A stretch of DNA of 64,000 bases, taken from positions 1-64,000 of the forward strand of contig NW_026919734.1 of the NCBI RefSeq assembly GCF_032062105.1, in the 5' to 3' direction. The stretch's first letter is position 1. Each line of letters begins with the position of its first letter. This document shows positions 1,987 through 43,580 of the stretch, piece by piece. Both the position numbers and the translations under genes were made by a program. The DNA is from Saccostrea cucullata (taxonomy: Eukaryota). The notes under the pieces were generated by a model. That model did no database searches. It was not told the origin of the DNA and saw only the letters and a list, made by a program, of their open reading frames with translations.

Positions 1987-4900
1987 CTATCTAAAATTAC
2001 TTTCATTTTGATGGTGCCTTTTGCTCTTGTCTTTTTTCCTAGATTTGAAAAGTTTCTTAATATATGAAGAGGAAGAGAAACTCAGAAAGAGAAAAAAACC
2101 TTGGGAAGAAGTCAACATAGTGACGGCAAAGGAGAAAATTGAAATTTGCAAGAAACTGTCTATAATCTGTAGGATCCAGACAGAACCGGTCAGACAAAAG
2201 AGTTTGGTAAAAATAACCAGTTCTGACCTGTTCTCTCTGGATTTCTGAAGATTTTTGTCCAGATTTATATTAAGGACGGTGAGAATGTACATGATGGTGT
2301 TACAAACACAGGTCAACAGGAGAGGGACTATAAAGGTTACAGTGTTTTGTATAAAGCGTTCAACAAAACACACTCTGGTGCCATAACCAATGCTGCCTTC
2401 AAAAAAGTAGGACAAAAGGACATTAGTGGACAAGGCAACAAATGGAAACATGTAGCTAAAGGTTCTATACTTGACTAAAATCTTGCTTACGTTACCATCA
2501 TGTATTAAACCACCAAATGTTCTAAAAGTTATAAACATGTGGTAACAGCATATGAATAGGCAGCAACACAGCCAAAAGTAATGTAACAAAACTCCACTTA
2601 TCTGACAAGAGAGGGTATCCTTGTGCAAAACATTGGCTATACGTTATACGTTATACGTTAGCTGCATACATATGAGTGAAAATGTGGTACTCATCACATT
2701 TAGCCCAGGAATCGTTCGCAAAGCGGGGAATTTAAGGTATATAACAAATAATAGGACCAAAGATAAGGTGCTGATGGCATTCAGAATGTTTGTTAAGGTT
2801 TCTAATATCTCGGAAATTCCTAATGCCTTCAAAAGGACAAAATTATTCTTGATGCAGACTCTAATTTTGTCATTGTAATCCATGACATATTCTCCAAGAT
2901 GAAAAACTTCTGTGGTGTCATTGGCAATGATACGATAATGCTTGAAATCAAAGTGAACATCATGGACATTAAAAACGCGCTGAGTGCATAATAATAATGG
3001 ACAAACCATCATAAGGGCGGGAAATTACAACGAATTCATCAGATTTTTTTAACAAGTGGAAGTCATTTTCTGGTATTAATTCAGACTGTGTTAGTGTTTC
3101 ACTTATATTGCAAAAATTTATGCCTTTTAAGACGAACGAAATTCTTTAAGAACCATCTAGAGTGTTATTTATCATAAGCAGTTGAGGAGTTTGCAGAAGA
3201 AATGTTTTCAATAGTTTCTCTAAGAAATGGCTTTATGTTATTAATACATAGCAAAAAATATGTAAAGTAGCTTGCAGCTCAAAATGAATATATTCCTTGC
3301 TGATAAACTTTGATCTCTTGCGGACGGGCAAGAAGATAAAACTCTTGAACTTCACAACCATACATAAAACTGGAATTTGATATTACTTTAAAAACTGCAG
3401 ATCTCACTTTGGTTAAAACAAGTTCTGTATCATTCATAAGCGATGATATAATAAGACTACATCGAATATATAGGTCATACTTCATAAAGCTGGGGGCAGC
3501 GATGATAGGTTTGCAAGATCCTTCCAATAATATTCGCCCCGGAAAGCAGATATGATCTAAAGACTGGAGAATATAAACAAAACTAACATCAAACTACAGG
3601 AGGGATAAACGAAACAAAGCTTTTATATTCTTTTATCAATTTTTCAAAAACATCATTAGAGTCTACAAATTGCAAGTAACTTCCATCTCTGTCAAGAGAT
3701 ATATCCCATTCCAAAATGTCTCACAAGAAATAAGATTGTGAAATATAAAAGTTCTAGCATCATCTGTTCAAAAGTTAGACCAATGATACATTTTTTGAAA
3801 GGTAGGTCAAACTCCAAGGTCAAAGGGTCAAAATTGTTGGTTTCTTAAGAAAGGTCTTGTCAGGACAAATAAATCTCTCATTAACTGGATGAAAGCCTTT
3901 GTGCCCGATAATCCGAGTATGAACGCATTCTTCTGAGGAACTTTTTAATACGAGTTATATTTACAAAAGAACAAAAAACGTTTCTATAAGGATAGACAAG
4001 ATCATGATATTGTTCAATTGGCAATGATAAACATGCATCCTTATAAAACACTTGCTTAGTATTGGATTTCGTACAACCAGGCTTTATCCCATAATTCCAG
4101 TGAATTGTGATGACATGCAAAGCTTGCATAATTCATGTTTATTCCTGCAAGCAGTTAAAGAAGGCATGTGACTTTTATTTTTATACTCCCATTTTTCAAC
4201 TTTGTTAGTTTTAACTTTTTCATCTGACGTTTTACATTCATTGATTGCTCCTGTAGTTTTCATTTTCTCCGTTGAACACGTAACGGCATCTTTAAAATTA
4301 TATGTAACGTCACATTTGTGGCCTGTTCAAAAACCTGGCTAAAGTGAATTAAAAAATCAAACTGTAATAAACTATCACATGCAATGCTGATGTCGAATAT
4401 TCTATATGGATCCATAACAAGAGAATTGTTTGTAATAGTATAATTGGTATTACAAAGGAAACAGAAAACATTTTTGTAGGTAACTCCCTTTGATAATACA
4501 AACAAGTCAAAGTCATCCAATTCGCCCTCACATAGTCTCTTGATCTTTTGTTGGTTTATGATGTTTGCAGCATTAATTCGCCGCTCATAGCATACACTTA
4601 TGACTTGTACTGTGGTTACTTCCTTATTAGAAATATAACTCAAAAAACTTTTGCATTACTGACACAACCAGTTGGATGAAGCAACGTTGTATCCAAGCAA
4701 CAGCTACAGGGATTTTTGAATAAACACGCAAAAGAACAGTCACAGTTTCTTAAGGTAATGTTTTTTGTATTTTTTGGCAAGATAGTTCGGTCACAAATTC
4801 GATGTGGATGCAGCGGCCATTTCGAATAGAAAAGGTTCGAACTGATCTGTAATGTTTCCAGTTGAGTTGGCAGGATCTGTGGTTAGGTTCTCTGTCGGTT

Positions 4901-6002
4901 TCGCATTTATGATCTTGTTGATAAGTGATTTTTCATTGAATTCATTGTTGTAGAATTATAACCGTCGTCCTGTCAACATTATATCCCTGTCTTCAAAACT
5001 TTCATCCACATCACTAGAAAGGTGAGGAAAAACATATTTTTGGCCTCATCGTTTAGGTGAGGAAGATTTCCGGTGTCTTTGGATGTTGGAATGTTACAGG
5101 CAAAACAATAAAAATTTCGATATGGATATGTCAGATTTGACACCGGATTATCCTGACACAACTTTTGTATTGTTTTCGAAACTGATTTTGGACAAGTATT
5201 GATAAAATTCTGAACTCTTTTGATGCTTTTCAGTTTGCACAAGTAACAAAAGAAAAAGATCTCGTTCACATAGGTTTAAGAGCACGCCAAATGAAGGTCT
5301 TCATCACCGGGACAAATTTCTGTTATATATTCATCATCTCTTAAATAGAAAGGGATTAGGATATCATTGAGACTTGCTGGAGGGATAAACGAAACAAAGC
5401 TATTGTATTCTTTTATCAATCTTTCAAAAACATCATTAGAATCTACAAATTGTAAGAAACTTCCATCTGTCAAGAGATATATCCCATTCCAAAAGGTCTG
5501 ACTTCTTTTCACCGTTACACAAGGCACAGTGGATATTGTAGTACGTGTAATTACTCACTAAGGAGGTCACGAACGCTCTGTCTTTAATAGTGTAAGCAGG
5601 GTTCTGGCATTTCTTAGATTTTCTGCAAAATCTGGACAAGTATCAACCACGTGATATTTGGGAGGTTCTAAATGTTTGTTCTTCAATGACCCTTGGAAAA
5701 CTGCGTCACGGAATCTTGTCAATTTCCCTTCGAAAAATTTGTCTGGACAACATCTGTTTATTTGAATGCAGTCATCCTCACAAAAACATGGCGGACAACG
5801 TGACGGCATTGAATACTCGTACCCTGTTAATCCCGGCCAGTCTTTACAAAGGCCTCTCTCTCCGCAAGAATTGATATATATACCCATAAGTCTTGTAAAG
5901 TTTAGTTTTGCACATGTACAAAACATATGTGTGAAAATTGACATGTGTCATAAGGTACATAATGTCTTCAATGTTGTTGAGCAAACTGAAAGTTAGAATC
6001 AT
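1987..6002 (-). pseudogene. Methuselah-like / adhesion-type family-B GPCR with Cys-rich (somatomedin-B-like) ectodomain repeats, disrupted
   Basis: 7TM_2-type C-terminus (LLHYFWL, GYGTRVCFV, FIVPLLL, KLFCLTG, SSQGFFLFL) in ORF 1987-2628. TM1-2 (LFVIYLKFPALRTIPG) lie in ORF 2644-3012, same frame, separated by an in-frame TAA. Ectodomain motifs CPPCFCEDDCIQINRCCPD and repeated Y[RK]NxxCxxCN are scattered over several overlapping frames (frameshifts). The 5' end is approximate. Confidence 0.75.
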
Positions 6003-8566: not shown

Positions 8567-10042
8567 TCAGACATCAATAGGTGGGTCACCATCGCAATGT
8601 TGTACTCTTATCTGCAATAATATAACAAAAATCTTTTTTTTTTTATAATTTCGAATTATGCAATTTCTATATAACTTTTTAAAATGACATCGATTTTCAG
8701 ATAAGTTCAATTAAATTCACATAGATTTCCAAATTGACATCATCTCATTCAACAAACACTAGATACTGATACCAGATTGAATAAAAACATAAACTTCAAA
8801 CAAAAGAACGCAACAATTAAAAAATCTTATAAAATTGATGGTAGGATGATGAATTATTAAAAAGTTGGATTTTCATAATTTATTCATTATCTTAATTTAA
8901 TTCAAACCTCATCTATAAATCCTTTAAAATTGTCAAATAAACCCCCAGCACCAATGACAAGCCCCGTCTGTCTCAAAAGAACCATTTCTGAAATAGATAA
9001 ACAATTAGTCGATCAGTCGATAGAGCGTTCGCTCGGACGGTCATGAGTTTGAATCTAAGTCGATAAAAAATTGATAGCAAATGTTCCTTCGCCATGCACT
9101 CGGCACTTTGAAGTGAAAGTTGCGGGTCTTTCGGATGAGACCTTAAAAACCAAGGTCCTGTAATTCGGCAGGTGTTGTTACAATAAAGATGCCTCACTTC
9201 TCAATGACCGCAGTTGCCGAATTATTGTCAAATTTGAAGCCCTTCACTGGTATATTCTGATATTTCTATATGAGTGAACAATTCTCGAATGAGACTGAAA
9301 ACGATACAATCATCAACTTATCTTAAAAAGACTTACCTTGAATATACTGCTTTCTGTTCTCTTTATTGAGGGAGAAGTTAATTACTGTCCCTTCACGATC
9401 AAAGCTCAACTTAACTTCATTTAATGTATCGTCCTACAGTAAATACCAAAACAGAGAAAGACATTGAAGACTATTTTAAGGTCACCTGAGTAAACTCAGG
9501 TGACCTATTGCTATCCGTTTTTGTCCGTCGTCGTGCGTCGTTCGTGGTGTGTTAACATTTGAACATTTTCAGCTTCTTCTCTGCATCCATTCAACTCAAC
9601 CAATTTCCACCAAATTTGGCATAAAGCATCTATGGGTAAAGGGGAACAAGAATTGTGAATTTCATAGTCCCTGCCCCCCTGGGGCCTGAGGGGCGGGATG
9701 AAAAGCACCAAAATTAATGCAATCTTTAAAAATCTTCTTTACTCCTGGACATCAAGCAGTCAAATTGTTAGCATGAATGTAATAACCATTGAGTCCTCTA
9801 CCAAAATTGTGAAATTCATGGCCTAGGGTCAGGAGGGGTTCTAGTGCTAAGGCGGGGCCATATAGATTATATAGTGAAAATGCATTATTTCTTAAAAATC
9901 TTCTTCTCTGCTCCTGTATATTAAATAAACTAACACAGTACATATTCATGATGAGAAAGAATGCCTTGTGCAAAATTGTGAATTTCGTGCATGGCCCTAG
10001 GGTCAGGGGTTCTGGGGCTAGGGTGGGGCTCTATTGATTATT

Positions 10043-10077
<35 letters not shown>

Positions 10078-13000
10078 TTCTGCTCCTAGGTATTAACTTT
10101 GTGCATAGTTATGATGAGCAAGAATGCCTCTACCAAAATTGTGAATTTTATGGCCCCGGGGTCGGTCAGGGGCTCCAGTGTTAGGGCGGGGCTCTATTGA
10201 TTATATAGAGAAAATGCAGAAATTATTTTAAAATCTTCTGCTCTGCTCCTGGGTATTAAAAGAATAAATTTTGTATATATTTATAATGAGCAAGAATGCT
10301 TCCTTCATAATTGTGAATTTTATGGCCCCAGGGGTCAGGGGTTCTTGTGCTAGGGCGGGGCTCTATTGCTTATATAGTGAAAATACATTATATTTTTGAA
10401 AAGCTTCTCTGCTCCTGAGTATTAAATAAACTAAGTATATAGTTATGATGAGCAAGAATGCCTCTTCCAAAATTATGAATTTTTATGGTCCCAAGGGTTA
10501 GGGGTTCTGATGTTAGGGCAGGGCTCTATTGATTATATAGTGAAAATAGATTATTTCTTTTAAAATCTTCTTCTCTGTTCCTGGGTCTTAGATAAACTAA
10601 CTTAGTACATAGTTATGATGTGGAAGAATACCTTTGTGAATTTTATGACCCCAGGGTCAGGGGCTCTGTTGTTAGGGCGGGGCTCTGTTGGTTATATAGA
10701 GAAAATGCAGAAATTGTTTGAAAATATTCTTTTCTGCTCCTGGGTATTAAGCAGATGAACTACCTATATAGCTATAATGAGCAAGGGCCATTCTTCCTGA
10801 ATTATGAATTTCAACGCCCCTGGGTCAGGGGTTACATGGGAGGGGGACTCTACTTATATACTGGAAATGAGTAAATTGATTGAAATCTTCTCCTTTTTAT
10901 TAACCAAATATTTTTGATAAGCAAGGGTGCCTTTTCCAAAATTGTGAATTGTGTGGACCAATAGTCAGGGGTTCATATATGGTAGTGGCACTATACTGAT
11001 TATTGCTGAATATTACTGAGAGGTCGAAATGCATTTTTTGTTCCCCTATTTTGTCTATGGGTATTAAGTAACCAAACTAAACATGCAAAGTGTATACATG
11101 TAGTTATGATTAGCAATAGTGCCTCTTTAAAAATTGTAAATGTCATGACATCTAGTTTAAAACATGAACCAAAGTCAATCTTTGTAAAGTTGTTGCATGA
11201 TGCTCAGGTGACCTATGAGGCCTATGGGCCTCTTTGGGTCTCTTGTTGACAATATTGTTAAAATTATTTGAAAAAAAAAAAAACACAGGGGAAATAGCAT
11301 TTATCTCAGAACGAAACTGTAGTGCAACTTTAACTAATTAACTGAAAGATGACTGAATGTCAACTGAAATATGACTGAATGCTTTAAAGCTCGCTCTGCC
11401 AATCAGTGACATTTCCAGCTAGATCTATCAGTTACCATTAAGTGAACTGAATGTTTAAGGTTTACTAGTATCTTGTGGTGTCCTAAGTTTTTACTTGATA
11501 TTTTGTTGGGTGCCACCATATATATGTGCCAGTGCCTGCAGTTTGTGTTTGAACCCCTATCACGTGGTTTATCCTGTCCAAAACAATGGCGACACTTGCT
11601 GTGCACGATTTGTAGTAGCAGTTAGAGAGAAGGGCCTGGTACTTCGTCTGTGTTTGTGGATTGTCAGACTGCAGGGCAAGGAACTTAATCGAAATCACTA
11701 GACTTCTGCAATATGGATTTAAAAAATCTGCTTTAGATGTAATTTATTATAGAGATATCGAACAGTAATCAAGCACAAAACTCCACTGAAGCGGTACAAA
11801 TCGGGAGCAGAGCGAAGAAAAACATTAAAACATGAAAGAATGGATCAGGTGCCATTTAAGACTAAGCCTCCCCTGTAATCCGTTACACCTGAAGGGAGTT
11901 ATATGTCATCGTGATATGTAATTTATTTTGAAGTGGTGAAAAGTTTTCCTGCATTGTCGTTAAAATCAAATGTAACATATACATTATCTGTACAATATAT
12001 TTTCACTCATTGAGCATCTAAATTTATGTACTGAATGTACCTTTCACCTTTCAATACGATGTCCTCAAATTTCGAATGTATAAAGCGATATTTTTTTTTA
12101 TTTTTCAGCATTATTATGTCAATATATCTATCAAAAATGCTATTGGATAATCATCACAAAATGACATCATACCTCCCCAAAGAGTGACTTACTCCTTAAG
12201 GTCATGACTTTTCAAAATTGTTTTTTTTTGCCATAACCCCTCCCACACCTCCTACTCCTTAAGGATCATGACTTCCCTTACTACTTTTCGGCCTACTACT
12301 TTGTACCATGACTCCTCTAAAAGTGGGTACCCCTTAAAAGTTCCCTACTCCTTAAAATCAGATGAACTTTCGATAGTTAATTCAATCGCGATGAGCTACT
12401 TTATTATTGTATAGGACATATTATCAAACCTATACTCAATGTTGGAGAAACGCCAAATATTCAGACAGCTGGAAACCCCGTCCAATTCCATCATGCCATC
12501 GTCTCTGCCGGAAATAACAACATTACGCTGCGCAACGTGGATATTGCGACTCGAGTAGTCTTTAAAGCCGTCAATGTTTCCATCCTCTCCTTTGTTAAAT
12601 TTCAGATAAAGTTCGTCTCGACAATCTGATGGCCAACATTGCAAAATAAAAAACAAACATTTTGGAAAAAAAAGTCCCCCCAAATAATTTATAAAGTAAA
12701 TGAATAATTGTAATGTATATTAAAATTTCGAAAGCTTCTTTCTATTTGTAATCTTGTAGACATTTTGTTTAAGTTTCGAAAAATCCAAAATAAAAAGAAT
12801 ATCACACAAGTTTAAAATAATCAGTGCATATCATTAGAAAACGTACAATTGGTACTGACGCTCGGACTCACAGATGTAGCTAATATTGGATTTTGAGTGT
12901 TGTGTTGTGTGCAGGCGCACGCTGAATGGTCAAAAAAGGATCCTGGTGCGCATGGGCGTGAAATATTTCGGTTGTGCACTTCCTCCAAGTATGATTGGCC

Positions 13001-26414: not shown

Positions 26415-26920
26415 TTTTTTTTCTTTGGGGGGAGACTAAACATCATTTCACAGGTTTAGAAAAGAAGATAATTCTTCGATTTTTTCACTATAGACTTAGA
26501 AAATGAAATTGACTTGCAAAGATTACTTAATACATGTGCTTCAATAAAACATTAGATATGAACTAATTATAGAAAAATATACAAAGCCATGTAAATTTTG
26601 CGAAGAAAAGTAAAATGGTGAAAAATCAGATTTACCATTTTGCTTTTCCCAATAAAATTCACCTGACTTGGTGTATTTTTATTAAAGTTCATATTACACT
26701 TTTGGCACCAAGCTAGCATATTCTGAAATTTGTTTTCATCTGTAAACCTCTACTGAGTGTGATTTGTCCATATTTGTAATTTTACTGAAATATTAAATAA
26801 TATTTTCTGTTTCATTTTCAAAGTCTAAGTTTAAAATACGAGTATTCAAAGAATTATCTACTTTTCTAAACCTTTGAGATGATATAGAGTCTCCCCCCCC
26901 CCCAAAAAAAAAAAAAAATT
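26415..26920. repeat. ~500-bp imperfect fold-back (MITE-like) in the PHM/precursor intergenic region
   Basis: Arms GGGGGAGACT...GGTTTAGAAAAGAAGATAATTCTT...AGACTTAGAAAATGAAA versus TTTCATTTTCAAAGTCT...AAGAATTATCTACTTTTCTAAACC...AGTCTCCCCC, with an inner palindrome centred near 26625. Confidence 0.65.
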
Positions 26921-27288
26921 GTATCATCTGTCCTTAAATATTGCCTAGACATCATTAATTAAGTAATATTACCAGATGAACTTGTTGTAGAAGAAACAAG
27001 GAATTTAATGAAAGAGAGAAAAAAATAATTATTTGCTTATCTGCATAGGTTTCCGAAGTGTTGTAAGGAATATTTTAGCTTGTCAATGAGCGGAAAAAAT
27101 TGAACAACCGTAATAAGCTGAAACAGCCAAATATAAAAGAACCTGTTTAATTTCATAGATATAATTAATGAACAGTTTTGTAAACTTATCTTAAGTGTTA
27201 ACAAAAAATGTATTCCTTAATCATTTAAAACATGCAAAGAAAAATATTTTATTTCCTAGACCAAGTTCATTTGTTGTACCAGATGCAT

Positions 27289-27586
27289 ACTGTAAACAAG
27301 GTTATCTTCGCCTAACTTTATTTTTGCCCTTTCAAAACGTACTGTTCTCTACAAAAATTTGAATTTTTCAATTAAAATTTGTATATGACAATTTTGTCAT
27401 ATGCAAATTTTAATTAAAAAATTCAAATTTTTGTAGAGGACAGTACTAACAATTTTGCCCCGTTTGAAGTTTGCCCAGTCACAGTTCTGTATAAGAAATT
27501 ATACAGTGTTCTTTAAATAAACCACGTTTTAAAATCGTCCTCTTGTGACGTGGGCGAAAGTGACGAAAATGTCACTGTATACAGTA
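27289..27586. mobile_element. TA-flanked MITE (TACTGTA...TACAGTA) containing a nested 106-bp palindrome at 27340-27445
   Basis: Outer termini TACTGTAAACA / TGTATACAGTA with TTCGCC/GGCGAA subterminal motifs. Inner near-perfect hairpin TACTGTTCTCTACAAAAATTTGAATT...AATTCAAATTTTTGTAGAGGACAGTA. Confidence 0.65.
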
Positions 27587-27913
27587 CACAAATGATGCTC
27601 ATTATGAATTACACTAAAACAATTGTATAATCTAAATAAAATCTACATAAAATTAAACTTAGCAGAATATTTTTATTTTAATAAACATTTTAAAAGTGAA
27701 TATTATTTCTATAAACATCTACATGTTTACATTTTAAGAACCCTGAAATTAAAAGTACAGATGGACTCTTTATCTGACCTTTCTGTTTTTGCTCTCCATT
27801 CCTAAAAGTACAGAAATGTAGACACGCAGATCTACGCCTTTCCTTATTAGATAAACATCAGAATGATTAAAATGACGCCATCGCAACTGGTGGTTCTCAA
27901 AACAAATATATAG

Positions 27914-27921
27914 TATATAAA
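27914..27921 (+). promoter_or_regulatory. TATA box of the repeat-peptide precursor gene
   Basis: TATATAAA about 65 nt upstream of ATG 27986. A CRE-like TGACGCCA lies at 27873-27880. Confidence 0.5.
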
Positions 27922-27985
27922 TGATGCAGTATTAGGAGATATTCAAACATTGTCTCTTTACATGTATACTTACTACACTGTCAAA

Positions 27986-30900
27986 ATGATGTCTACTTTG
28001 ATTGCTGTTCTTGTTCTTATTTCTTGCTCCCAAAGTGTGCATTCTTTAGAGTGTTTTGAAATTATATGAAATTTTTATTTTTTGAATTTCAATTTGTTTT
28101 CTGTCAATGTTTTATTTAACGCTGTTTATAACATGTAACTTAAAATGCAACATGAACATTTTATATTATGAATCCGATTAATATCAAATTATTTTTAGAC
28201 TTTGAAAAGATAATGTTTAGTGGTATTGGTTGCTTCTATCAGACTTTCCGGATAACATTCATTTCTTTTATTCAGGTGCAGTTTTGAGAGGAATTGATTC
28301 ATTTTCAGACGAAAATGTTGATGTAATTTCACCAGCAGGTAAGAAAATCCATTGAATGATTTTAAAAGAAAGACATCTCACTGAATTTTAGGAGATTTCT
28401 TAACTAAAATGATATACTTATTCTCAGGTGAGAAAAGAGGGTTGAATTCTTTTTCGGATGAAAATGTTGATGTAGCTTCGCCTCTGGGTAAGTATATTCA
28501 TTAGTGTTTTATAATGTTTAATTGAAAAGATGTTGTATACCTGTAGAAAACCTTAATTATGCTTATCAATTCATGGTTCATAGTCTCTGTGTTCATTAAA
28601 TTTTGTTTTACAGCTTCTTCTATTTTTTGAGGAAAAGAACTGAATTTTAAAAGTAAACTGTATACATTTTTATAGCATATCATGCGGAGTGAAAGTAGAA
28701 AACATGACATTTCACCTTGACAAGTTTAATTTATTAAGGATGCTACACATTTTCCTTATTAAGAGTTATGTTACTTTTATTAGATTATCGCATAACCGTA
28801 TATATTATCTATTTTTAGGCGTGAAAAGGGGGGTGAATTCTTTTTCTGATGAAAATATTGATGTAGCTTCATCTTTTGGTAAGAATGCATTCCTTTAAAT
28901 GCGTTTGTTAGAATTTTGAATTCTAACTACAAATTATTAGCGTAGCATATCTTATATCTTATAAACTCTTTAATATACATATTTTAAGAAGTAAAAAGAG
29001 GATTGAATACTTTTTCGGATGAGAACGTAGAATAGCTTCATCTGTTGCTAAGAAAAAAATCTTTTTTTTTGCTTATTTGCAAATATTCGTATTTCAACTT
29101 ATAAATTAAGAGCGGAACATACTTTTTTTTAAATAACTGTAAATCAGTTTTATTGAATAAATTTTATTATGTGTAGATACATGTACACGTAATATAGAAT
29201 CATTTCGTTAAGTTTGATTGGCTAATAATTTGACAAATAACAAATATGGGTATCGCCACTTAAAATAAGTTATTGCAAAAATAAAATGATCAGCATTGTT
29301 AAAAATATATATTTTTTTTCAGTGAAAAGGGGAGTCAACTCTTTTTCGGATGAAAATGTGGACTTAGTTTCACAAGTTGGTAAGTAAACATATAAATATT
29401 TAGAAAATGCACAACTTATTATTCATTATTAAGGGATGCCTTAATAAAATTTGATATATTTGTGGGGTTGAAAAGGGGAATGAACTCTTTTTCGGATAAA
29501 AATGTTGATGTGGTTTCATCAGTGGGTAAGAAAAAAAAAAAGATATTTATATTTGCAAGAATCTGGATTTCTAATAGCAACAAGTACTTTTTTTTATAAT
29601 TGTAAAACACTTTTATGCTGGAGAACTTTATTTATTCGTATTTACGGGAGACAGTCTTTCATTTTTGTTCAAACTTCTATTCATGATAATGTAGAGTACT
29701 AAGTATAAACAGTGAAAATGTTGACTGCATTTTAAACCCCAAAAATTTATCTCGCAATTTAAAGGGATCGCAATAATAAACGATCTAATTTGCTTAAGAT
29801 AATGTTGTTCTTTTCATCAAAAAGAGTATCAGCTTGGGTGTAATTTGATGTAGTTTATTCATTACAAACAGTCTCCGTCAAGGATCTTTCCTTTTCACAA
29901 TTAATTAAGTGTTTTTTCGGATGAGAATATAGATGTAGTTTCACAAACGAAAGTTGGACTGGAAAAAATGAATGTCGAGGGATGTGTATATAAGAATTCA
30001 AAGTTCAAAGTAAAAATTGAGGGGTATATGTTTTTTATATAATAATTGTAAATCGCGTTCATTCGCGAGAACTTTACATGTACTTTGACGTGAACCGCCT
30101 GCTTGCGAAAATTTGTTCTTTCGAAAAATTCTACTTCATATGAAAACTTAGTTTGTGAAATTTTGATAACAAATATCAATTTCACTAATAAAAATAATGT
30201 ATTGATCACAAAAATAAAATGATTATATTTCAAAACAATATAATTCTTTCAGTGAAAAGAGGACTGAATTCTTTTTCGGATGAAAATTTGGATGTAGCTT
30301 CATCAGCCGCTAAGAATAACAATGAATGTTTTTTGACAAAATATAGAGATAATGAAAAGTATTCAAACTCATAAGTTCATTAATACAACAATTATTAGGA
30401 GCAGGGCAAAAAAAAAAACGATCTTCTTAATCAAAAAGGTGGGATCAGGTGCCTTTATTGGTATCGATATTGTAAAACTATTAAATATTAGGATTTCACC
30501 TACCCGTTTAGAGTTCATTATCTCTAAGTTCACTTATACACTGTATAAAAATAATGATTTAAAGCTTTTGATTTTTTTTTGAAAAAAATATATATTAAAG
30601 GTAAATTGTGAACAATTCTTAACATAGCTTGCGGCATAAAACTGGAGAAACATGCCATTTCACATTGACAATTTTATAAAGGAATAAAACACATTTATTT
30701 AAGTTCTCTTCTGAATAACTTTCCACCCTAACACTGATATATTTTCAGGAGTGAAAAGAGGACTGAAATCTTTTTCGGATGAAAATGTTGATGTAGCATC
30801 ACATGCTGGTGAGAAATATTAAAAGTTTTTAAAATGAAGACATCTAAATGATTATAAGGGGATTCTTAACTTAAATTTAATATATATTTTATCAGGATTG

Positions 30901-33683
30901 AAAAGGGGAGTGAACTCTTTTTCTGATGAAAATGTCGATGTAGCCTCACCTCTTGGTAAGAAAGCCTTTGGCTGTATATGTTTGACTATGGAATTCTCAC
31001 TACAACTGAATAGCGGAGCATACTTTCTTTTTTTAAAAGTTATATTATTTACACTGTAAAATCTGCTATATTTTCAGGAGTTAAAAGGGGAGTGAATTCC
31101 TTTTCGGATGAAAATGTTGATATAGCTTCATCAGTTGGTAAGCAAAATGGAAGCTTGACTTTATTAAGAGTTATATCACTTTTATTAGATAATCGCATAA
31201 CCTTAAAAATTATCTATTTTTAGGCGTGAAAGGAGAAGTTAACTCTTTCTCTGATGAAAATATTGATGTAGCTTCATCTCTTGCTAAGAATGCATTCCTT
31301 CAAATGCGTATTTTATAATGTTGAATTCTAACCACATTTAATAGCGAAGCATATCTAGATCTTATGTTATGTATAACTGTAAATCAGTTTTATTGAATAA
31401 ATGTTATTAAATGCAGATATATAGAATCATTTCGTTAAGTTTGATTCGCTCAAAATTGTGATTAACAAATATGGATCTCGCCACTTAAAATAAGGTATTG
31501 CAAAAATAAAATGATCTACATTGTTAAAAATATATATCATTTCAGTGAAAAGGGGAGTGAACTCTTTTTCGGATGAAAATGTAGACCTAGTTTCACAAGT
31601 TGGTAAGTAAACATATAAATATTTAGATAATGCATACTTATTATTCATTATTAAAGGATGCCTTAATAAAATTCGATATATTTGTAGGGTTGAAAAGGGG
31701 ACTGAATTCTTTTTCGGATGAAAATGTTGATGTGGCTTCATCAGTGGGTAAGAAAAAAAAGATATTTAAATATGCAAGAATGTGGATTTCTTTAAAACAG
31801 TCTAATTCATGCGAATTTCTTTTTCATCTGCTCATTATATAAAAAAAGTTTAACGTATTAGGATGTGTACATGAATTCTTTTATTTTTTGAGTTCAAATT
31901 ACAAATACAGGAGCATATTTTAAAAAATGTTTCTCGAAATATTATTTCACAGTAAAAAGAGGACTGAATTCATTTTCGGATGAAAATGTTGATGTAGCAT
32001 CACATGCTGGTGAGTAATATTAAACGTTTTTAAAATGAAGACGTCTAAATGATTATAAGGGGATTCTTAACTTAAATTCAATATATATTTTATCAGGATT
32101 GAAAAGGGATGTGAACTCATTTTCTGATGGAAATATCGACGTAGCCTCACCTCTTGGTACGAAAGAATTTGGCTGTATATGTTTGACAAGATGGAATTCT
32201 CACTACAATTGAATAGCGGAGCATACTTTCTTTTGTTTTTTTTAAAAGTTATATTATTTACACTGTAAAATCTGCTATATTTTCAGGAGTTAAAAGGGGA
32301 GTGAATTCCTTTTCGGATGAAAATGTTGATATAGCTTCATCAGTTGGTAAGCAGAATAGAAGCTTGACTATGTGTTAGCAAGTATTAGGAATTCTTATAA
32401 TATATCATTAGCGTGGCATACTGTTTAAAGACATGAAACTTTAAAGTATTATTCGTTCAAATTTCATTTTAATATTTTTATCATCTACTCGCAGAAATTT
32501 CATTCCCGCTGAAATCTTCTATTATACAGAGCATAGAAAATAATTTTCGAAAAGTTTTTTTGGCTCAGAATTTAAATAATACCGGTAATTGTCGATCTTA
32601 CCACTTAAGATAAGGTATTGCAAAAATAATGTTTACTCTATTACTTAAAATATTTTTTTTCAGTGAAAAGGGGAGTGAACTCTTTTTCGGATGAAAATGT
32701 GGACGTAGTTTCATCTGTTGGTAAGACAAAAAGATGAATGTTTTGGAATGTGTACAATGAATGCTTTTATTTTTTTTTTTTTAGTTTAAATTACAAATTA
32801 ATACCGAAGAATATTTTGATGTTTTTTAAATACAATTTTACAGTGCAAAGAGGACTGAATTCTTTTTCGGATGAAAATGTTGATGTAGCATCACATGCTG
32901 GTGAGTAATATTGAAAGTTTTTAAAATGAAAACATCTAAATGATTATTAGGGGATTCTTTACTAAATTTTATATATATATTCAGGATTGAAAAGGGGAAT
33001 GAACTCTTTTTCTGATGAAAATATCGATGTAGCTTCCTCTGTTGGTAAATAAACCTATCATTACAAAATAAGTTTTGTAAATACCAAAACATTTATATCT
33101 CTTTTAATTTTGTTGGAGTAACACAAAGTTCAATTCCATTTCATTTTAAAATTACATTTTTTAATCAATGTTGACTTTAATAGGTGAGGAAAGAGGCCTG
33201 GAAACTTTTTCCAGATGAAAATATTATCGTAGTTTTCATAAATGTTTTTATTTCTATAGATAAGATAAAAATTGTAGCAAGAATTGAGTATGTAAATTTA
33301 CATTGTTAATGAAATTGGAGGAAAATTGTCAAAAAGTGTTTAAACATGCACTTTCTCTACTCCATAGGAGTGAGGAGAGGGGTGAACTCATTTTCAGATG
33401 AAAATGTGGATGTTGCTTCAAATATTTGTAAGTGTATATGATTTTTTTTCTGTGTGAAAATGTTTTTTAAGGAATCTTCATCAAGTTGATGACAGGTATC
33501 TTACTATTTAAGCCTAGTTTTGCTTAAGAACAAATAACTATTATCAATTAATACCTATTCTCGTTTCTATTTTGGTCTTGCTTTATATTGAAACAAGGAA
33601 GCTGTTAATACATTTAAAAAAGAACAAATATTGTGTATATTTGCAAATCATAATTATGAATTTATTTTTATTTTGTTTTAGAA
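27986..33683 (+). CDS. Secreted multi-copy peptide precursor (signal peptide + 16 acidic peptides separated by mostly KR sites, one per micro-exon), ~332 aa
   Basis: Exon 1 27986-28034 (MMSTLIAVLVLISCSQ, signal peptide; donor GTGTGC is weak). Intact phase-1/1 repeat exons: 28276-28338, 28428-28487, 28819-28878, 29323-29379, 30749-30808, 30896-30955, 31078-31137, 31546-31602, 31688-31747, 31953-32009, 32097-32156, 32287-32346, 32664-32720, 32844-32900, 32985-33044, 33368-33427. The stop codon is split T|AA into a last exon starting at 33682; AATAAA at 33762-33767. Each exon encodes (G)x-[KRQL]R-G[LVMI]NSFSDEN[VI]D[VIL][AVI]Sxx. Confidence 0.88.
28989..33240 (+). pseudogene. Dead copies of the peptide exon interspersed in the precursor gene
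   Basis: 28989-29047 (1-nt deletion, donor GT>CT); 29466-29525 (acceptor AG>GG); fragment ~29910-29946; 30253-30309 (donor GT>CT); 31224-31283 (KR>KG, donor GT>CT); 33184-~33240 (frameshift, no donor). Confidence 0.75.
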
Positions 33684-33761
33684 ATCTAGACAACATTCCA
33701 GTGAAAATGGAAACTTCTGATGATATATGTTTTAAGTATTTTTGCCACGAGCTGAACAAAC

Positions 33762-33767
33762 AATAAA
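33762..33767 (+). terminator. Polyadenylation signal of the peptide-precursor gene
   Basis: AATAAA about 80 nt after the split stop codon, within the terminal exon. Confidence 0.55.
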
Positions 33768-34965: not shown

Positions 34966-37900
34966 TCAGTCTTTCAGATATTGATCAATCTCCGATGGTA
35001 GACACATGAAAAGTTCAAACTAAAAAATAGACAAGGTAAAATTATTAAGGCTAGAACATTTAATATTTAAATTTTTATTATGTATAAATTTGGGAGAAAA
35101 AAGCTGCCAGAATTTATTCTTGTTAATATTAATGATATTATTGATTTTTTTTAAAATATAACATTAAAACGTTTTCACTTTCAAATAAGCTGCAAAGAAT
35201 TCCTAATCAAACTTACGTTATCAACATATCCGGTAAAATGCCCTAATTGACTTCCGGCTCCGATAACAATACCACTCTGTCTTTTAATAATGTGTCCTAA
35301 AAATAAACAAAGCATCCCAATAAATTAAAATCTCTGAATTGTTTGTATTATTTCATGACACACAGGGATTAGAAACGCCGATTTTTGTTGGATAAAGCAA
35401 ATTTTAAGACCCAGTCAAGCATGCTTTCTTGTATGATTTGGATTCCAAAAGTAGTCTGCAATATTGGGATATATGTTGAGTAGTATGACACAAATGTCCT
35501 TACCTGTAAGTCTAACATTAGCCCTCACGTTGTTAATAACTGCCACTGCATTCTCCCCATTGTAGATAAAGATTACCTTATTCATCACATTTTTCTGTAA
35601 TAATAAAGTTAAAATATTGCGAATGTTGTATTCTTTTCTATTGTTTTGTTTTATAGAGCATTTTTGGGTTTCAAAAGAAGCTGTAAAATAATCTTAATGA
35701 AAAAGTGATTTTAGATAGATAAAAGACATTTTATCAAACACTAACCCCGTTCACCTAGATTTTCATATATTTCAATTTGAAACAAAAACGTCTGGGTTAA
35801 AGTGGACAGATACTGCAATAACATACATAGTACGATTGACGAATAGTTAATAATCAACTATTACAAAAGCTTTCAGTATGTTGTCACTTTACCACATGCA
35901 GATCTTAGATCCGCCGATAAAAAAACAGAATCGCCCATAAATACAATAGATCCGCCCAAGAATACAATGATTTACCGTGTAAGGCACGATGAACTCTGCC
36001 TTGGCGTCAGAAGTCTCCAATCCAAAGATAACAGCGCTGATTTTCTTATCCACAATCATCGATATCGTGGCCTCTTCCTGGTACGAGAAGATACAATTGG
36101 TAACCAGTGCCTGCTGTTCAGCGCCACCTGGTAGTTCCTGGAACTCAAGCCTGATAACGAGGCTCTCCTGAAAATCAACGAATGCGAAGCGGTAGAGATT
36201 GATCATTCCAGATCCGTTGAATTTGGCCATTCTCAGAGCTGGGTCAATATCGACGTATTCGTACGTGACGGTGATGCCATTCGTGGAGGAGTCCGCAAAG
36301 GGTCTAGACGGGTCATCAAAAGTCATGATTACTTCCGGTTTACATTCTAAAAAGTTGAAGACAATTTTTACTACAATGTCCATGTAAATTTTTGTAAGAA
36401 GAAACTCTGTCGTTTGAACGTAAGATTTTAATTGTTTCTTATTTTTAATAATGTTTAATCTGAAATATTTAATACATGTCCATCATTTCACCTATGTTTT
36501 TTTAATTTAACAATTAAGTTTAAATTACTCACCATTAAGATTTGAGGAAGGCAGAATGGTGACCATCCTGGTGCAGCCGCAATCAGCGGCGACGAAAGCG
36601 GTTCCTAGCGGACAGCGCATAGAGATGTTTCCAGACGGCGCCATTTGTATAAATTTCTGTTCATCAGTAACATCAGGAAAGTTTGTGCAAACTGAAAAAC
36701 GAGAGTCTCATTGTTTTCAGGTACATCTTTTCATATATTAATTTTAGTTGATAATGATAAAGGCCCCCATCCTCCCGAAAAATCAACACAAACTGCAATG
36801 TTTATGTCTGATGATTCATTTAAGATAATCATTTATTTATTAGTCAATTATCGTTCAAATTTCTTTTCTCTGTGTTTTCAAACAGACGTTTGATGAATCT
36901 TGATATAAGTGATTTGTATGACCCATCTATATATAATTGTTATGCATGATTTGAACACTAAGTGGTAAATTTTTATGGCTATACTTGGCTTCCTTTAACT
37001 TTTTGTACCTTGCGTTTTATGCTACTAAATCATGTTATATGGGGACTTAATGGCTACTGTAATGGCGGAAATGTCATTATGTGTGCAGTTTTAGCATTAC
37101 ATCTGTCACAATTATCATAAACGATGCATGTCTTGGTGAAGATTCACTAATGTGTACTGTTCAACGAGATAGAAGACAAATTAATGTATATAACTCTACA
37201 TATACATGTATAAAAAATGTCGAGTCTTAAACTGACTGCCAGTGTAGTATACAAATTGATTAAAATTAGTATATATAAAATTAGAAACACTTCTTAACCG
37301 ATACTGTTGTTTGATATTGTGTTCATAAAATGTGTGCAGTAATTTCAATGTTAAGTATCATAAATTCACGAAATTGGTATTCTAATATTAGCGTCGCTCA
37401 TTATTCTAATTAATAATGAAAACCTTTGATTCTAGGAAACAGTCAATTAAATGATTTCTATATAATAAACAAAGAAAATAAAACGTTTAATTGCCTCTGA
37501 CAAAATACTTACCAACAGGGGCGACAATTCTGTTATCTTTTGGAGGACAATCTGACAAACAGGTTGGATCCGTGGTGCAGCCCACGCCCTGTACGTAAGC
37601 GTTATTGCCGGACGGACAACAGGAAGCCACCGCGGTTCCATTCAGACATACCCAGAATGCACTGCAGTGGTCCGCCATTGCTATAGTGCCAGCAATCTTC
37701 CCGATACAAGGACCTACAATTGAGAATTTTGATTAAATGACTCTGAAAATGAGTTTGAATATATACATGTATATTGCTTAAAAAAGCAAAGAAATTTCTT
37801 GGCATTTTAATGAGGAGCATAAGAAATAATTAAAAATTTATAAAGAAGTCTTTTTCTCATGGAATGAATTTTTGAGACTTGAAGAAGAGATATCGGTTCC

Positions 37901-40900
37901 TGTATAGTTGTGGTAGTGATGAGTAGTTATTTATATTATATTTTACATTTTGTGTTGGAGTTAGATTTGTTACTTTCCTTGTACATGTACCTTGAAAAAA
38001 TGAATGAAAGTTAATCCCTAATGAAAATAAGTAGTTTTAAGGTTATAAAGTATATTATTTCATTAATTAGCTGCCTATGCCTTTTTGACATCATTATGAC
38101 CGGGTCATCCTATCATTCCCTTTCTTTCTGCTTGTCCACATTCTGTCATCTTTCCTACTTAAAATTATGACTTAATGTCAATACTCCCTATGTCATATTA
38201 TCTGCGCTTACCAACTTATGAAGTAGCTACTAGGTGCTTGCATTGACAACAAACGCCCATTGTAGGTTCAGTCAGAATAATGAACCTATCTGTACATACA
38301 CTATTTCGACTTTTACTGTTGTAAAAACCTATTCTTTCACAAAAGGGACCCCCTTTCTCCCGTTTAAGACCATGCAGGACTACTTAAAAAGACATACTTT
38401 TGTCTATATGGTCCTCTATCGAACGTGACTGGCGGGGCATAGCCTACCTCACTTAAAAAACACACTCCTAGTGTACAAGCAAACTGTTCGAACACTTACT
38501 ATCCGGGCAGTATACTTCGTGGGCGGGTTGACATGTTAGATGATTCAGATTCCAAAACTGTCCCCAAGGACACACGTGCATGAATTCCAGGGCCTTTCCG
38601 TCAGCATCAGGTAGCATGTAGATGAACTTTGTACAATCTCCAGCTACGGATTTATAGCCCCAGTTTCGACCAATGATACAATTTGGACAAAGCTCAGCTG
38701 TGAAAAAAGGGGAAAATAAACTTTCCGAAGTTTAATTAAGAAAAAAACGTCATTAAAAGGTGAAAAAATTAAACTTTTGAGTATCTTATTGTTTAGATTA
38801 AGCAGAAATGATAAAAAATCATACATATACAAAGTAAAAGAGCTTTTTGAAGTAAGTTAGTCTTTTAAAAATTTGATTTTATCTTCATGTATGTTTTAAA
38901 TCTATTTGTTTAATAAATTCTCAAAAAATTAAATAAATAAAAACAGATGTAATGGTGTAATGGATTTATTGACTCACGTGCTATTGAGTTGATTCTGTCC
39001 GTAGTGAAAGGTAGAGCCTTTGTTGTAGTGATTGGACTAGTGGGGCCTGGAGAAAAAATATTTATATTCATATCTATAATGGTATTATTACAATTTCCAA
39101 AATAAAAAAAATGAAATCTCTTAATAACATAGAATTAAAAAAAGATAATTTTTGGTTTGAACATATTTTATTGTTAAGATGTTACAACAAAAGGATTGGA
39201 CACAAGTACTTAATACTTAGAACGTCCTCTCCTTAGATAATTTAAAAAAGATAATTCAGTAGTAAAAATAAACAACAACTATAATTCTAATCTCGAAAGT
39301 GACCATATATTCAGTATTAACTGGTTATAAAATTTATTAAATGAACTTCAGTTTTTGAAATGTCTTTTTATCCAAAATGATCAGGATTTGATACAGAAAT
39401 CAAAAATAAACTATTCTTTTGAGAGTTGGTTGTCTTTATCAATATGAAAAAAACCCACACTATTATGCCTATAAGACTTAAATATTAACGTTTGCTAAAG
39501 ATACAGTTGAAGAAATCAATTCATGCTACGATACCTCCTGTTATGATAAGGTTTATCTGGTTACTAGACACCTCTCCGAGGGCCGTAGTGACTACCAACT
39601 GGTAATTAGCCTCATCCGTGCTGTCAACGCCATTGATCACAAGAACAGGGTTAGTTATAGAGTTAGTACTTCCGGTGTATTTGCCGGAAGTTCCTATCAC
39701 GTCGATGTCATAAGCGGCTCCGTTACTAAACACTTTCTGCCACCTGACGGACAGAATCTGGACGGTGGCGGAAATAACAGCTGACAATGTAGCTGTACTT
39801 CCGTATCCAACAATAGAACTTCCGCTTATGGTAATGCTTGGGAGTTCTGCAAAAGAAAATTTTTAATGTTTTATCCTTATTATGAAGATAATTATCTCTT
39901 TAAGATTCTTTAATTTCATGTTTTTAATTAAAAAAAAAAGAACATTAATAAAAACTTTTTTAAATTACCGACGACTCGGATTTCAATAAGATTACTGGTA
40001 GTCTCTCCTCCAGTATTTGTCACAACCAGCCGATAGATGGCGCCGTCATTATAATTAGCATTATTGATAACAAGTCTTGGATTTAACGAAGAAACAGTGC
40101 TTCCAGAGTATTTCCCAGAAGATGACGCAATGTCTATATCTGTTACAACGCCACTTCCTGTGACCTTCTGCCATTTCATGGAGGTGATGTTTGAAGATGT
40201 GCTTATTGTGGCAGTTAAGATAATACTTCCTCCCAGAAGAACGGTAGATCCACCAGATAATACAATTACAGGTGGTGCTAAAAGATAAACATTAAAATTT
40301 ATAGGTGATTGGCTGATAGATTTTTGGTTATATAACAAATCCTCCCTCTGTATTCTATATGTTGCAGATATTTCTTCTGCCCAGCCTAATTAAAAGTTTG
40401 CATTTCAAATTCACATTAAATACAAAGAGAACAAAGTTCTGAAACTGTGCCTAGGGCGTGATTCGGAAAATCATTCACACGAAGGAAATCACCGGTCGAC
40501 AGGGGATACTAACCCTTTCATGGCACCTGATTCTACTTTCGATGTTTAAAGAGGTCCGTCTTTGTTCTAATCCAAATTTGTATTAATACAATGGACTTGT
40601 GAGCTAGGCTTCTGTTCATTATCTTCATGCATGTATTTCATACAGTGATTCCATTTTGATATTGTATACCTATTTTTGGATTTTACCTTCACAGACTAAG
40701 GGTCTCAATGCGGCATCCACCCTCTCCAGGGAGTCATTGAAAGAATTAGCCACGCTGAACACATTGGATGCAGTTGCAATTGTCTCTAATTCGGTTCTTA
40801 TAACAAAAAAGAAAAAAAATCATCATATATCAAGATCTTAGGCTTCTTTGTCAGCTTTGTAAGTCTATTCCACAGACAGACCTGAGAATAATAAAGAGAA

Positions 40901-43580
40901 ACGAAACTGTGTCTGTGATAATTTTACTTGAATTCGAAACTTCGGCTAAACACACCTGAAGATACTAGATCCGAATCCGATAGCTAACAGAGTGATGCCC
41001 TCTGCCCTCGCCATGGCTGCCTGGTTTTTGGTCTGATCCGGTCGAGCGGAACGACCGTCCGTGATGACCACTCCCACGCGATGGACAAAGTCACGTGCTA
41101 GGTTTCAGAAATAAACATTCAGTTAAATAGTTATCTACTGGCAATATCAATTACTGTTTTACTTTAATTGCAGAATTAAACTGATATTGTTGTTAAATAT
41201 GTGATATCAAACTCTAAATATTGATGATTGGTTAAGAATATAAAACATAACCCGAATTATAGCGTACATGAATTACAAATTAGAAAAGGATGCATATGTC
41301 ATATTTTAAACTTTAAGAGTAGTTTTATTTGATATCAGTGTTCATGTATAATCATTTTATAATACCAATTTTCGAATTATGTACATGAAAAGATCTTTGC
41401 AGTTTGTTAACTATGGTGTACCAATAGGGCCGTTTGCACAGTGTCAATGGCCCTATCGGGGCACCATAGTTTCTAAACTAAAATGTACCTAGCAAGAGCT
41501 GAAATTTAAAATAAAAGTTTCTTAAAACAATGATGTCCTCGTATGGCAGCTGAACGTTTCACAAAAGCAAATCGAACTCGGACAGGTCAAGAGTTTAAAA
41601 AATAATGATAAACAGTGAAAGGTCTTGTTAACCTTTTGACCTAGCAGTTTGATCCACTATTGATTAATTGTGCCAGACTTTAACCTTGTCAATAACTTTT
41701 AATCGGTTGAATCTGCATTCATATTTCATTGGTATATTCCTTGTGAGAAGACCTTTTCTCGCGTACAAATTTTTTTTTTTTTATCTTTTGACAATGACCT
41801 TGGAGTTTGACCTTCTTTCGAATAACTTTTTCTCCGGTGAAAACCTTGTACAGATAATGCTAGGGCTTTGATATATCATATATATAGTGGTGCCTGCTTT
41901 ATGCTATATTTAATTATAGGGGGTCAGATTGCATAATATGAGACCAAAGATTTTTGTATTCTTTCGAAGTTTTTCTAATCTTGTCTTACCCCCTTATAAT
42001 ATGTTTATATTTTTGTTTTGCGTCATTTACTTCAATAAATGACATTTTTTCACTTTCACTACTGTTGTTATTTTCTATTTAATCCATCAGAAAACTAGCT
42101 CAGTTGACTTGGCTTCGGTCTTGCATTAATAAACGAGGAACATAAATAGTCTTTTAATTAAGTCATCTCTTAAATACAGAAACTTTGTACCTTTAACATT
42201 TAATCTCAGAGTTTTATCTACTTTTGAAAAAAACCCAAACAAATTAAGCTTTGTAGATTCTTATGACATCTTGTGCCAGAGCTTTCGTATTTTTCACAGG
42301 TTTTTCTTTTGACAAGGTCTTTCTTTGAAAACCGATATTGTTGATCGCTGGACGTTGACCTTAGTGAACTGAGAAAATGTCAACAAAAATCAACATAAAT
42401 CAACCCACCCCCGTCCCCAATCTGGAATTTGAATTACATTATACAAAACACCCTTGATCTGAATCATCACTGTTCCCAATCTGGAATTTGACTTACTTTA
42501 TACAAAATTTAACCTTCGTCTTGAGCTACCAGAATCATCACTGTTTCATAGACTTCTCTTGTTTTATAGTTAATGTACATGTACGTGCTACTTTTCCATT
42601 AAATTAATAAATGTTACATAGGAATATATAGGAAAATAAAAAATCTTCTTCTGAACCACTGGGCCAGGAAAGATGAAACTCATGTGGAATCATCCTCAGG
42701 TAGTGTAGATTTAAGTTTGTTCATGTCATGTTGCCAAGGAATATATAGGAAAAATGTTATTAACATGTAGTAAATTAAATGCTTAAGAATTTTCAAAACC
42801 CAGAAATTATTCAATGACATGCATGGCAACTTTGTAATGATGCTTTTGAAAAAGGTCGCAAAATGAATAAATAAATAAATAAATAAATAAAAAAACCCAG
42901 TAATTTTACTCACTACTTTTAGTTCGGAACATTTCCCTCATGGATTCTAACGCCCGAGCGGTTCCGGTACCGGATTTAGGGTGAGCAAGATTTTCAATTC
43001 TTGCCGCTAATAAATATTTGTTGTACGTTGACGTTAGTTCTATGGTATCGGCTGGATAGGTTCCGAACACAATCACGCCGATTCTCGTGTAGTTTTCTTC
43101 TACTGGATATCCCAGTAGTAAATTGTTCACAAACTTTTTCATACTTTTAAAGTCATCGTCTTTTAGACTTTCGGAACCGTCCAAAACAAACACAATATCT
43201 GATGGGACTCTACAATTCAACTCTGTGAGAAAAGAGAAAGTGAAAGTTAAAGCATTGGACATTTTACTGAAACGTTAATAGGTTACAAAATTAAAACAAA
43301 AATTTAAAACCAAATGTAAATAATGCATATTTGATGGCAACTGCTAATTTATTTGAGTTGCATGATAGTATTCTATTGAAAACTGAAATACAACTCAACA
43401 AAATATTTTGAAGCATCAAATTGAAAATATAAAATCTTTCATGAAAATCATGTCACAATGTCGTTATTAATGAGAGGCAGTACTGGACGTACGTTGGGAT
43501 GAAGACAAAGAGATAATTTGAATGAAGACGAATAGACAACTCAGAAATCCGACCCACGATGATGATTGTTGCTGGATCAT
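34966..43580 (-). CDS. Pif/BMSP-like secreted protein B: signal + VWA + 2 Ig-like + S/T linker + chitin-binding type-2 repeats + LamG/ConA-like domain, ~830 aa
   Basis: Exons (minus): 43580-43493 (MIQQQSSSWVGFLSCLFVFIQIISLSSSQ), 43222-42914, 41097-40956, 40796-40687 (VWA: DIVFVLDGSES, VVITDGRS), 40277-39969 and 39846-39535 (Ig-like, WQKV...KYxGST...DxAxYxL), 39046-38978, 38697-38500, 37713-37513, 36691-36533 (ChtBD2-like), 36346-35976, 35594-35504, 35296-35217 (GIVIGAG...FTGYVDN), 35019-34966 (stop). Total 2493 nt in frame. Confidence 0.87.

Follow-up and report, generated by a model that had tools for sequence, protein, structure and literature searches.

How does a gene made of some 60-nt exons, each carrying a single short peptide, work, and what might its peptides be for? 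This question is raised by a locus in the window analyzed here, the 64,000-nucleotide stretch C1871:1-64000 (free of N) of a 1.17 Gb assembly of the oyster Saccostrea cucullata. An initial annotation had proposed that positions 27986 to 33767 encode a precursor of acidic peptides that it did not recognize. We evaluated the architecture of this gene, which is read here from genomic sequence and whose splicing is predicted, together with the selection on its repeats, its relatives, and its neighbors. Our tentative answer is that the gene is functional and restricted to Saccostrea, and that its products may be sequence-specific ligands, released by a convertase and secreted at high dose.

Architecture of the peptide precursor gene

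A six-frame scan of the window located 22 copies of a ~60-nt unit; every one lies on the plus strand, and the region from 28276 to 33427 contains them all. Sixteen of the 22 can be spliced as exons, flanked at constant distances by a YAG acceptor and a GT donor, and the donor reads GTRAG in 14 of these 16. They are the same 16 exons that the initial annotation had listed, and all of them were found in the expected place and orientation, spliceable and in phase. Each is 57, 60, or 63 nt long with phase 1 at both ends. Acceptor-donor pairs of this type number 16 in the 5.2 kb array versus ~0.3 per kb in the rest of the window, a comparison among mutually related copies that is not an independent test.

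The predicted precursor comprises 18 exons (signal, 16 peptide, and terminal) with a summed length of 999 nt and 332 amino acids, and its introns span 84 to 1369 nt. The ATG at 27986 is in good context, 72 nt downstream of a TATA-like box (27914..27920, plus strand; consensus match only), and opens a 16-residue hydrophobic stretch. Coding exon 1 (27986..28034, plus strand) would encode the signal peptide, judged by hydropathy only, with seven-residue values up to 3.8 and small residues where cleavage is likely; it probably ends at a phase-1 donor at 28035. Peptide exon 1 (28276..28338, 63 nt) holds the end of the signal, a single-Arg site, and peptide 1. Peptide exons 2 to 15 follow on the same strand at 28428-28487, 28819-28878, 29323-29379, 30749-30808, 30896-30955, 31078-31137, 31546-31602, 31688-31747, 31953-32009, 32097-32156, 32287-32346, 32664-32720, 32844-32900, and 32985-33044, respectively. 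The last peptide exon (33368..33427, plus strand) has an RR site and ends in T, the first base of a stop codon that is assembled by splicing to the AA at the start of the terminal exon (33682..33767, plus strand). The terminal exon continues into the 3′ UTR (untranslated region) and an AATAAA at 33762-33767, and the matching arrangement is present on a second contig, C18090.

Each peptide exon supplies one basic cleavage site and, behind it, one acidic peptide of 16-18 residues (pI ~4, net charge ~-4), with the consensus G(V/L)NSFSDENVDVAS followed by a tail of 2-4 residues. The sites are 13 KR, one RR, and two single Arg, the Arg being invariant. The single-Arg sites are LR before peptide 1 and QR before peptide 14; save for the latter, previously read as KR, the earlier list of 16 products was correct. 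As a result of the QR site, peptides 13 and 14 may remain joined, or peptide 13 may retain Gln. The C-terminal residues are Val, Leu, Glu, Gln, or Ile, of aliphatic character, and a Gly directly before a basic site is absent in all 16 peptides, which therefore do not require ordinary amidation. The precursor thus has the repeated peptides flanked by basic convertase sites that are typical of prohormones. The splice signals, phases, signal peptide, and basic sites all support the proposed spliced, secreted, convertase-type polyprotein as a prediction.

Selection and turnover of the peptide exons

The repeats had been attributed to protein-level selection rather than to a satellite, and a dN/dS-type check agreed. 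Over 18 aligned codons, the proportions of synonymous (pS) and nonsynonymous (pN) differences between copies were 0.45 and 0.13 (pN/pS 0.28; bootstrap over columns 0.13-0.51). The ratio was 0.18 in the first 16 codons and 1.3 in the last two. Three of the five other frames gave 1.0-1.3, one gave 2.0, and the antisense frame that shares codon positions gave 0.38; the other two forward frames (1.1-1.3) have stops in every copy. The 16 spliceable exons have neither stops nor frameshifts. Identity between copies was 0.74-0.92 within the exon and dropped to 0.3-0.4 within 10-20 nt outside it, so conservation follows the frame and the splice sites, which in a satellite it would not. Tandem Repeats Finder reported nothing over the array. 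The further idea of a constant recognition sequence followed by a variable core did not fare as well, with a tail this short and with selection acting on the constant part.

Multi-exon blocks have been duplicated together with their introns at 67-93% identity in a self-comparison, including 30737-31160 versus 31939-32369 (93%) and 28810-29572 versus 31069-31791 (78%). The other six copies, which the initial annotation did not list, lie in introns, have lost a splice site, and include those with the frameshifts, KR>KG, and E8K. On the plus strand, these are 28991..29049 (donor GT>CT, 1-nt deletion), 29466..29525 (acceptor AG>GG, E8K), 29907..29950 (core fragment only), 30253..30309 (donor GT>CT), 31224..31283 (donor GT>CT, cleavage site KR>KG), and 33184..33244 (1-nt insertion, donor lost). 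Because the damage sits in unspliceable copies and multi-exon blocks are duplicated, the array gains and loses whole exons and leaves dead copies behind. The identical donor change GT>CT was seen in several decayed copies (29050, 30310, and 31284) and in one unit type on C18090; it is in part shared ancestry through block duplication, and possibly recurrent or spread by gene conversion.

A second array in the same assembly

The peptide family is confined to three contigs of the assembly, C1871, C18090, and C19276. A second array occupies C18090:1-13300, with 50 units in higher-order blocks, and C19276 is a further piece. We count this array in favor of a functional gene: its last exon and split stop match those of the window, in-phase splice sites are present in 19 of its 50 units, and its pN/pS is 0.37. 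The last exon and the split stop are kept at ~80% identity to the window, as is the 3′ flank over 5.3 kb, and the exons of the next gene are 91-95% identical. The 5′ end of the array, its signal exon, and the remainder of the next gene were missing from the assembly, which leaves two readings of the array: a haplotype that is very divergent and partly assembled, or a partial duplicate. Pattern matches on C1347, C10650, C15401, and C23134 were rejected as chance matches within other repeats.

Comparison of the two arrays refined the set of conserved positions. The residues initially described as invariant (S4, F5, S6, D7, N9, D11, and S14) are so in the 16 exons of the window, but D7 is Ala in the spliceable exons that are most common in the second array. 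The site Arg, S4, F5, S6, N9, D11, and S14 are kept in both arrays, whereas D7 and E8 are replaceable by Ala or Val, leaving S-F-S-x-x-N-x-D-x-x-S as the common pattern. The replacement of D7 and E8 weakens a purely charge-based role and favors recognition of the specific sequence.

Search for relatives and similar systems

No described family matched the peptides that the initial annotation had called unrecognized. A profile of the exon found no genuine match to the precursor among 1.84 billion protein representatives, although E 1e-5 to 1e-7 would be expected for even one near-identical repeat. A word-index search with this profile, limited to proteins of 46-147 residues and thus to a range outside which the full-length precursor falls, returned nothing. 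There was likewise no match in Pfam, PDB, ESM Atlas, or metagenomes, the core motif was absent from a full-text literature search, and the supplements of three neuropeptide surveys (oyster, scallop, and spiralian) held chance words only. The profile match to P0001 (L024, a JGI contig) was rejected as false, being driven by an intron flank in the first profile row. P0001 itself, an unnamed singleton, is a protein of repeats: short spacers separate its six near-identical cysteine-rich units.

In the downstream gene's exon, other oyster-like genomic contigs show ~80% identity. The peptide was not found in these contigs over 4.9 kb and 2.4 kb past the stop of that gene, while the window has it at 1.5 kb. 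The absence of any trace at the syntenic spot suggests, weakly, that the peptide gene is confined to Saccostrea or has moved.

Kinship with pedal peptides and orcokinins had been raised and did not hold beyond a loose N-terminal resemblance. Like the molluscan pedal peptide/orcokinin precursors (PMC4200219 and PMC12564202 supplements), which have many non-amidated peptides of 14-18 residues between dibasic sites, the precursor is a multi-peptide one, and its peptides also have a hydrophobic residue, D or N, and S near the N-terminus. Pedal peptides and orcokinins, however, are marked by (F/Y/L)DSI near the N-terminus, a Gly-rich middle, and a C-terminal GF(x), a pattern that oyster pedal peptides show as DSI, Gly-rich stretch, and GF, whereas the present repeats have (V/L)NSF, a strongly acidic middle, and an aliphatic C-terminus. 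A pedal peptide precursor of the ordinary kind is present in Saccostrea echinata. The arrangement of one peptide per micro-exon, which the initial annotation regarded as unusual, is indeed uncommon but has precedent in the Xenopus laevis magainin and caerulein genes, where tandem peptide-encoding exons are thought to raise output (PMC3731216). Unlike those precursors, to which it is unrelated in sequence, the oyster gene encodes 16 acidic linear peptides with no spacer, shows measurable synonymous divergence between copies, and keeps dead exons in its introns.

A divergently oriented gene for a predicted copper monooxygenase

The most informative neighbor of the precursor, not used in the initial annotation, is a predicted copper monooxygenase gene on the minus strand (20820..25918). 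Its 12 exons and 323 codons, with phases that close without a break, encode a predicted secreted, monofunctional enzyme of the PHM family, with a signal peptide and without a lyase domain. The start codons of the two genes are 2068 nt apart and the genes face away from each other, which makes the interval between them (25919..27985) a candidate shared promoter region by orientation only. All six copper-ligand motifs are present; HH, QxH, HxH, and EMC occur in the order and spacing of rat PHM, giving His-His and His for CuH and His-x-His and Met for CuM (exons 3, 5, 8, and 12). Exon 8 was aligned to rat PHM and the other ligand exons were placed by motif. When searched apart, exons 8 and 9 matched rat PAM 223-248 and 249-266 without gaps, and while each match is weak (E 0.3-0.4), their adjacency is evidence for the PHM relationship. 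Exon-by-exon searches gave no Pfam match, the single exons being too divergent to score. An intron of this gene contains a ~800-nt high-copy repeat with inverted ends (22930-23750).

In PHM, the peptidyl-Gly substrate is bound through its carboxylate by Arg240, Tyr318, and Asn316 (PMC12164859). Unlike rat PHM, the neighboring enzyme has Thr for Arg240 (gap-free alignment) and Ser for Tyr318 (by motif), and Asn316 is kept. The carboxylate clamp has also been lost in two older PHM-like paralogues, both on the plus strand (C1313, ~105900-113300; C5604, ~8800-18000), which are 44-62% identical in the exons compared and escape the Pfam copper monooxygenase models. No peptide of the precursor family was detectable on either contig, nor did the assembly contain a close copy of the enzyme beside the second array. 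The assembly has ~25 copper monooxygenase-type genes; C11524 carries four or five genes for copper type II monooxygenases in a tandem cluster at 137000-177000.

A pairing of repeat precursor and copper enzyme has partial counterparts outside animals. Fungal KEX2-processed repeat proteins and dikaritin precursors (PMC9769878), and also plant burpitides (PMC12164859), share with the oyster precursor a signal peptide and repeated cores cut at dibasic sites. The cores of dikaritins (PMC9769878) and plant burpitides (PMC12164859) are oxidatively modified, the latter by a copper enzyme whose site resembles that of PHM (PMC12164859). The oyster system differs from both in being animal, in having a candidate enzyme of the PHM fold, in that any modification is putative, and in that the linkage occurs at one locus.

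Other features of the window

Two tandem paralogues flank the enzyme-precursor pair on the minus strand (34966-43274 and ~8900-16700). Both have VWA and chitin-binding (CBM_14) domains and a C-terminal LamG-like part, and the downstream paralogue also has two Ig-like exons (39524-40338). In this they resemble the Pif/BMSP shell-matrix proteins. Further away, a G protein-coupled receptor (GPCR) open reading frame at 54241-55065 is 100% identical to an S. cucullata RefSeq protein and 87% identical to one of S. echinata. An adhesion-GPCR-like coding stretch on the minus strand (1987-5944) is spread over several open reading frames, as if frameshifted, and represents either a pseudogene or assembly errors. 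A tandem array of a 163-166-nt unit (9795-10750), similar to the Cg170-type satellite of oysters, was also found on C18090.

Possible functions of the peptides

In the reading that we tentatively prefer, the 18 exons would splice to a 332-residue frame, as read from the sequence, with a signal peptide and 16 repeats. By standard prohormone processing, a convertase would cut after KR or RR and carboxypeptidase E would trim the basic residues, yielding 15-16 acidic peptides, linear and without amidation, each 16-18 residues long. The codon statistics show selection on the constant part, so the peptides would be near-equivalent copies and the array a dosage device, for which tandem peptide exons offer precedent (PMC3731216). 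Because each exon is phase-symmetric and has its own cleavage site, unequal crossing-over could add or drop whole peptides with the frame intact, as block similarity and dead copies show, and a copy that lost a splice site would simply be skipped. The retention of S-F-S-x-x-N-x-D-x-x-S while positions 7-8 become Ala or Val argues for sequence-specific recognition, most simply by a receptor, and we infer a neuro/paracrine or water-borne signal peptide. Several points weigh against this. The signal-exon donor at 28035 (GTGTGC following AAA) is weak and the sole other phase-1 candidate, at 28053, is weaker; the precursor lacks the acidic spacers and amidation signals of many neuropeptide precursors; its absence from the protein representatives, given the sensitivity of the search, means that the gene may be unannotated or lowly expressed; and signaling peptides are usually older than a genus, at odds with the apparent restriction to Saccostrea.

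The neighboring enzyme opens another possibility, which we consider rather unlikely: an animal cassette resembling those for peptides that are ribosomally made and modified after translation (RiPPs), in which a multi-core precursor with one exon per core is divergent with a dedicated PHM-fold copper monooxygenase that tailors the peptides. The enzyme would be co-expressed, meet the precursor in the secretory pathway, and oxidize an internal residue of each repeat instead of a C-terminal Gly by copper-oxygen radical chemistry, e.g., beta-hydroxylation of the invariant Phe5, Asn9, or Asp11 (+16 Da), and this would be compatible with any end function of the peptides. Consistent with such a cassette, the two genes are divergent, 2.07 kb apart, and both have signal peptides; the enzyme has kept its copper sites and lost the amidation clamp (Arg240 to Thr, Tyr318 to Ser), amidation is not needed by peptides of which 0/16 end in Gly, and the pair sits together between the two VWA/chitin-binding paralogues. 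The chance that some multi-peptide precursor would have a head-to-head enzyme gene is 4-7%, a rough estimate that assumes ~35,000 genes, 100-200 precursors, and ~25 such enzyme genes. The linkage is, however, found at one locus only, without a close enzyme copy at the second array in the assembly, and the clamp-less paralogues on contigs without a detectable peptide imply that clamp loss predates, or is independent of, the pairing. Enzyme-substrate gene clusters are also rare in animals. The precursor by itself adds an undescribed peptide to a known kind of multi-peptide gene; the enzyme cassette, if real, would be much newer.

The acidity of the peptides and the identity of the flanking genes could instead indicate peptides of the shell or adhesive matrix. 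In the extrapallial space, these would bind calcium or assemble by themselves into amphipathic beta-strands (alternating N-V-D-V-A-S). The D-x-N-x-D spacing, with pI ~4 and net charge ~-4, would suit this role, as would the VWA and chitin-binding domains of both flanking genes, a domain set like that of Pif/BMSP shell proteins. Fibril-forming, KR-processed peptides also exist in fungi (Rep1; PMC9769878). A matrix role is nevertheless improbable given that, in the second array, Ala or Val stands in place of D7 (and of E8 in one type) in the most frequent spliceable exons, and that a pN/pS of 0.18 is tighter than the drift that matrix proteins usually tolerate. We give still less weight to defense or mucus peptides made in bulk, as in the tandem exons of frog skin peptide genes: restriction to one lineage, turnover in copy number, and the precedent from Xenopus are in keeping with it, but the peptides are anionic and short, without an amphipathic helix or cysteines, and selection on their core is purifying rather than diversifying. 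Least probable of all is that the gene is dead or dying and that its exon-intron unit has come to act as satellite DNA. Splice sites have been lost in 6 of the 22 window copies and 31 of the 50 on C18090, and the first donor is weak, but 16 spliceable exons without a stop or frameshift, a low pN/pS, and damage concentrated in the unspliceable copies speak for a gene in use.

At the least, the locus encodes an undescribed genus-level family of secreted peptides from oysters of a group that is farmed. Neuropeptide surveys based on open reading frames or similarity cannot see this family, since each of its peptides is housed in an exon of 60 nt, and its array cleanly documents how peptide exons are born and die. 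If the neighboring enzyme does modify the peptides, the genes of a precursor and its maturase would be linked here in the genome of an animal. The divergent PHM-family enzymes that lack the peptidyl-glycine clamp would then gain a first substrate, along with a new reaction that can be tested directly.

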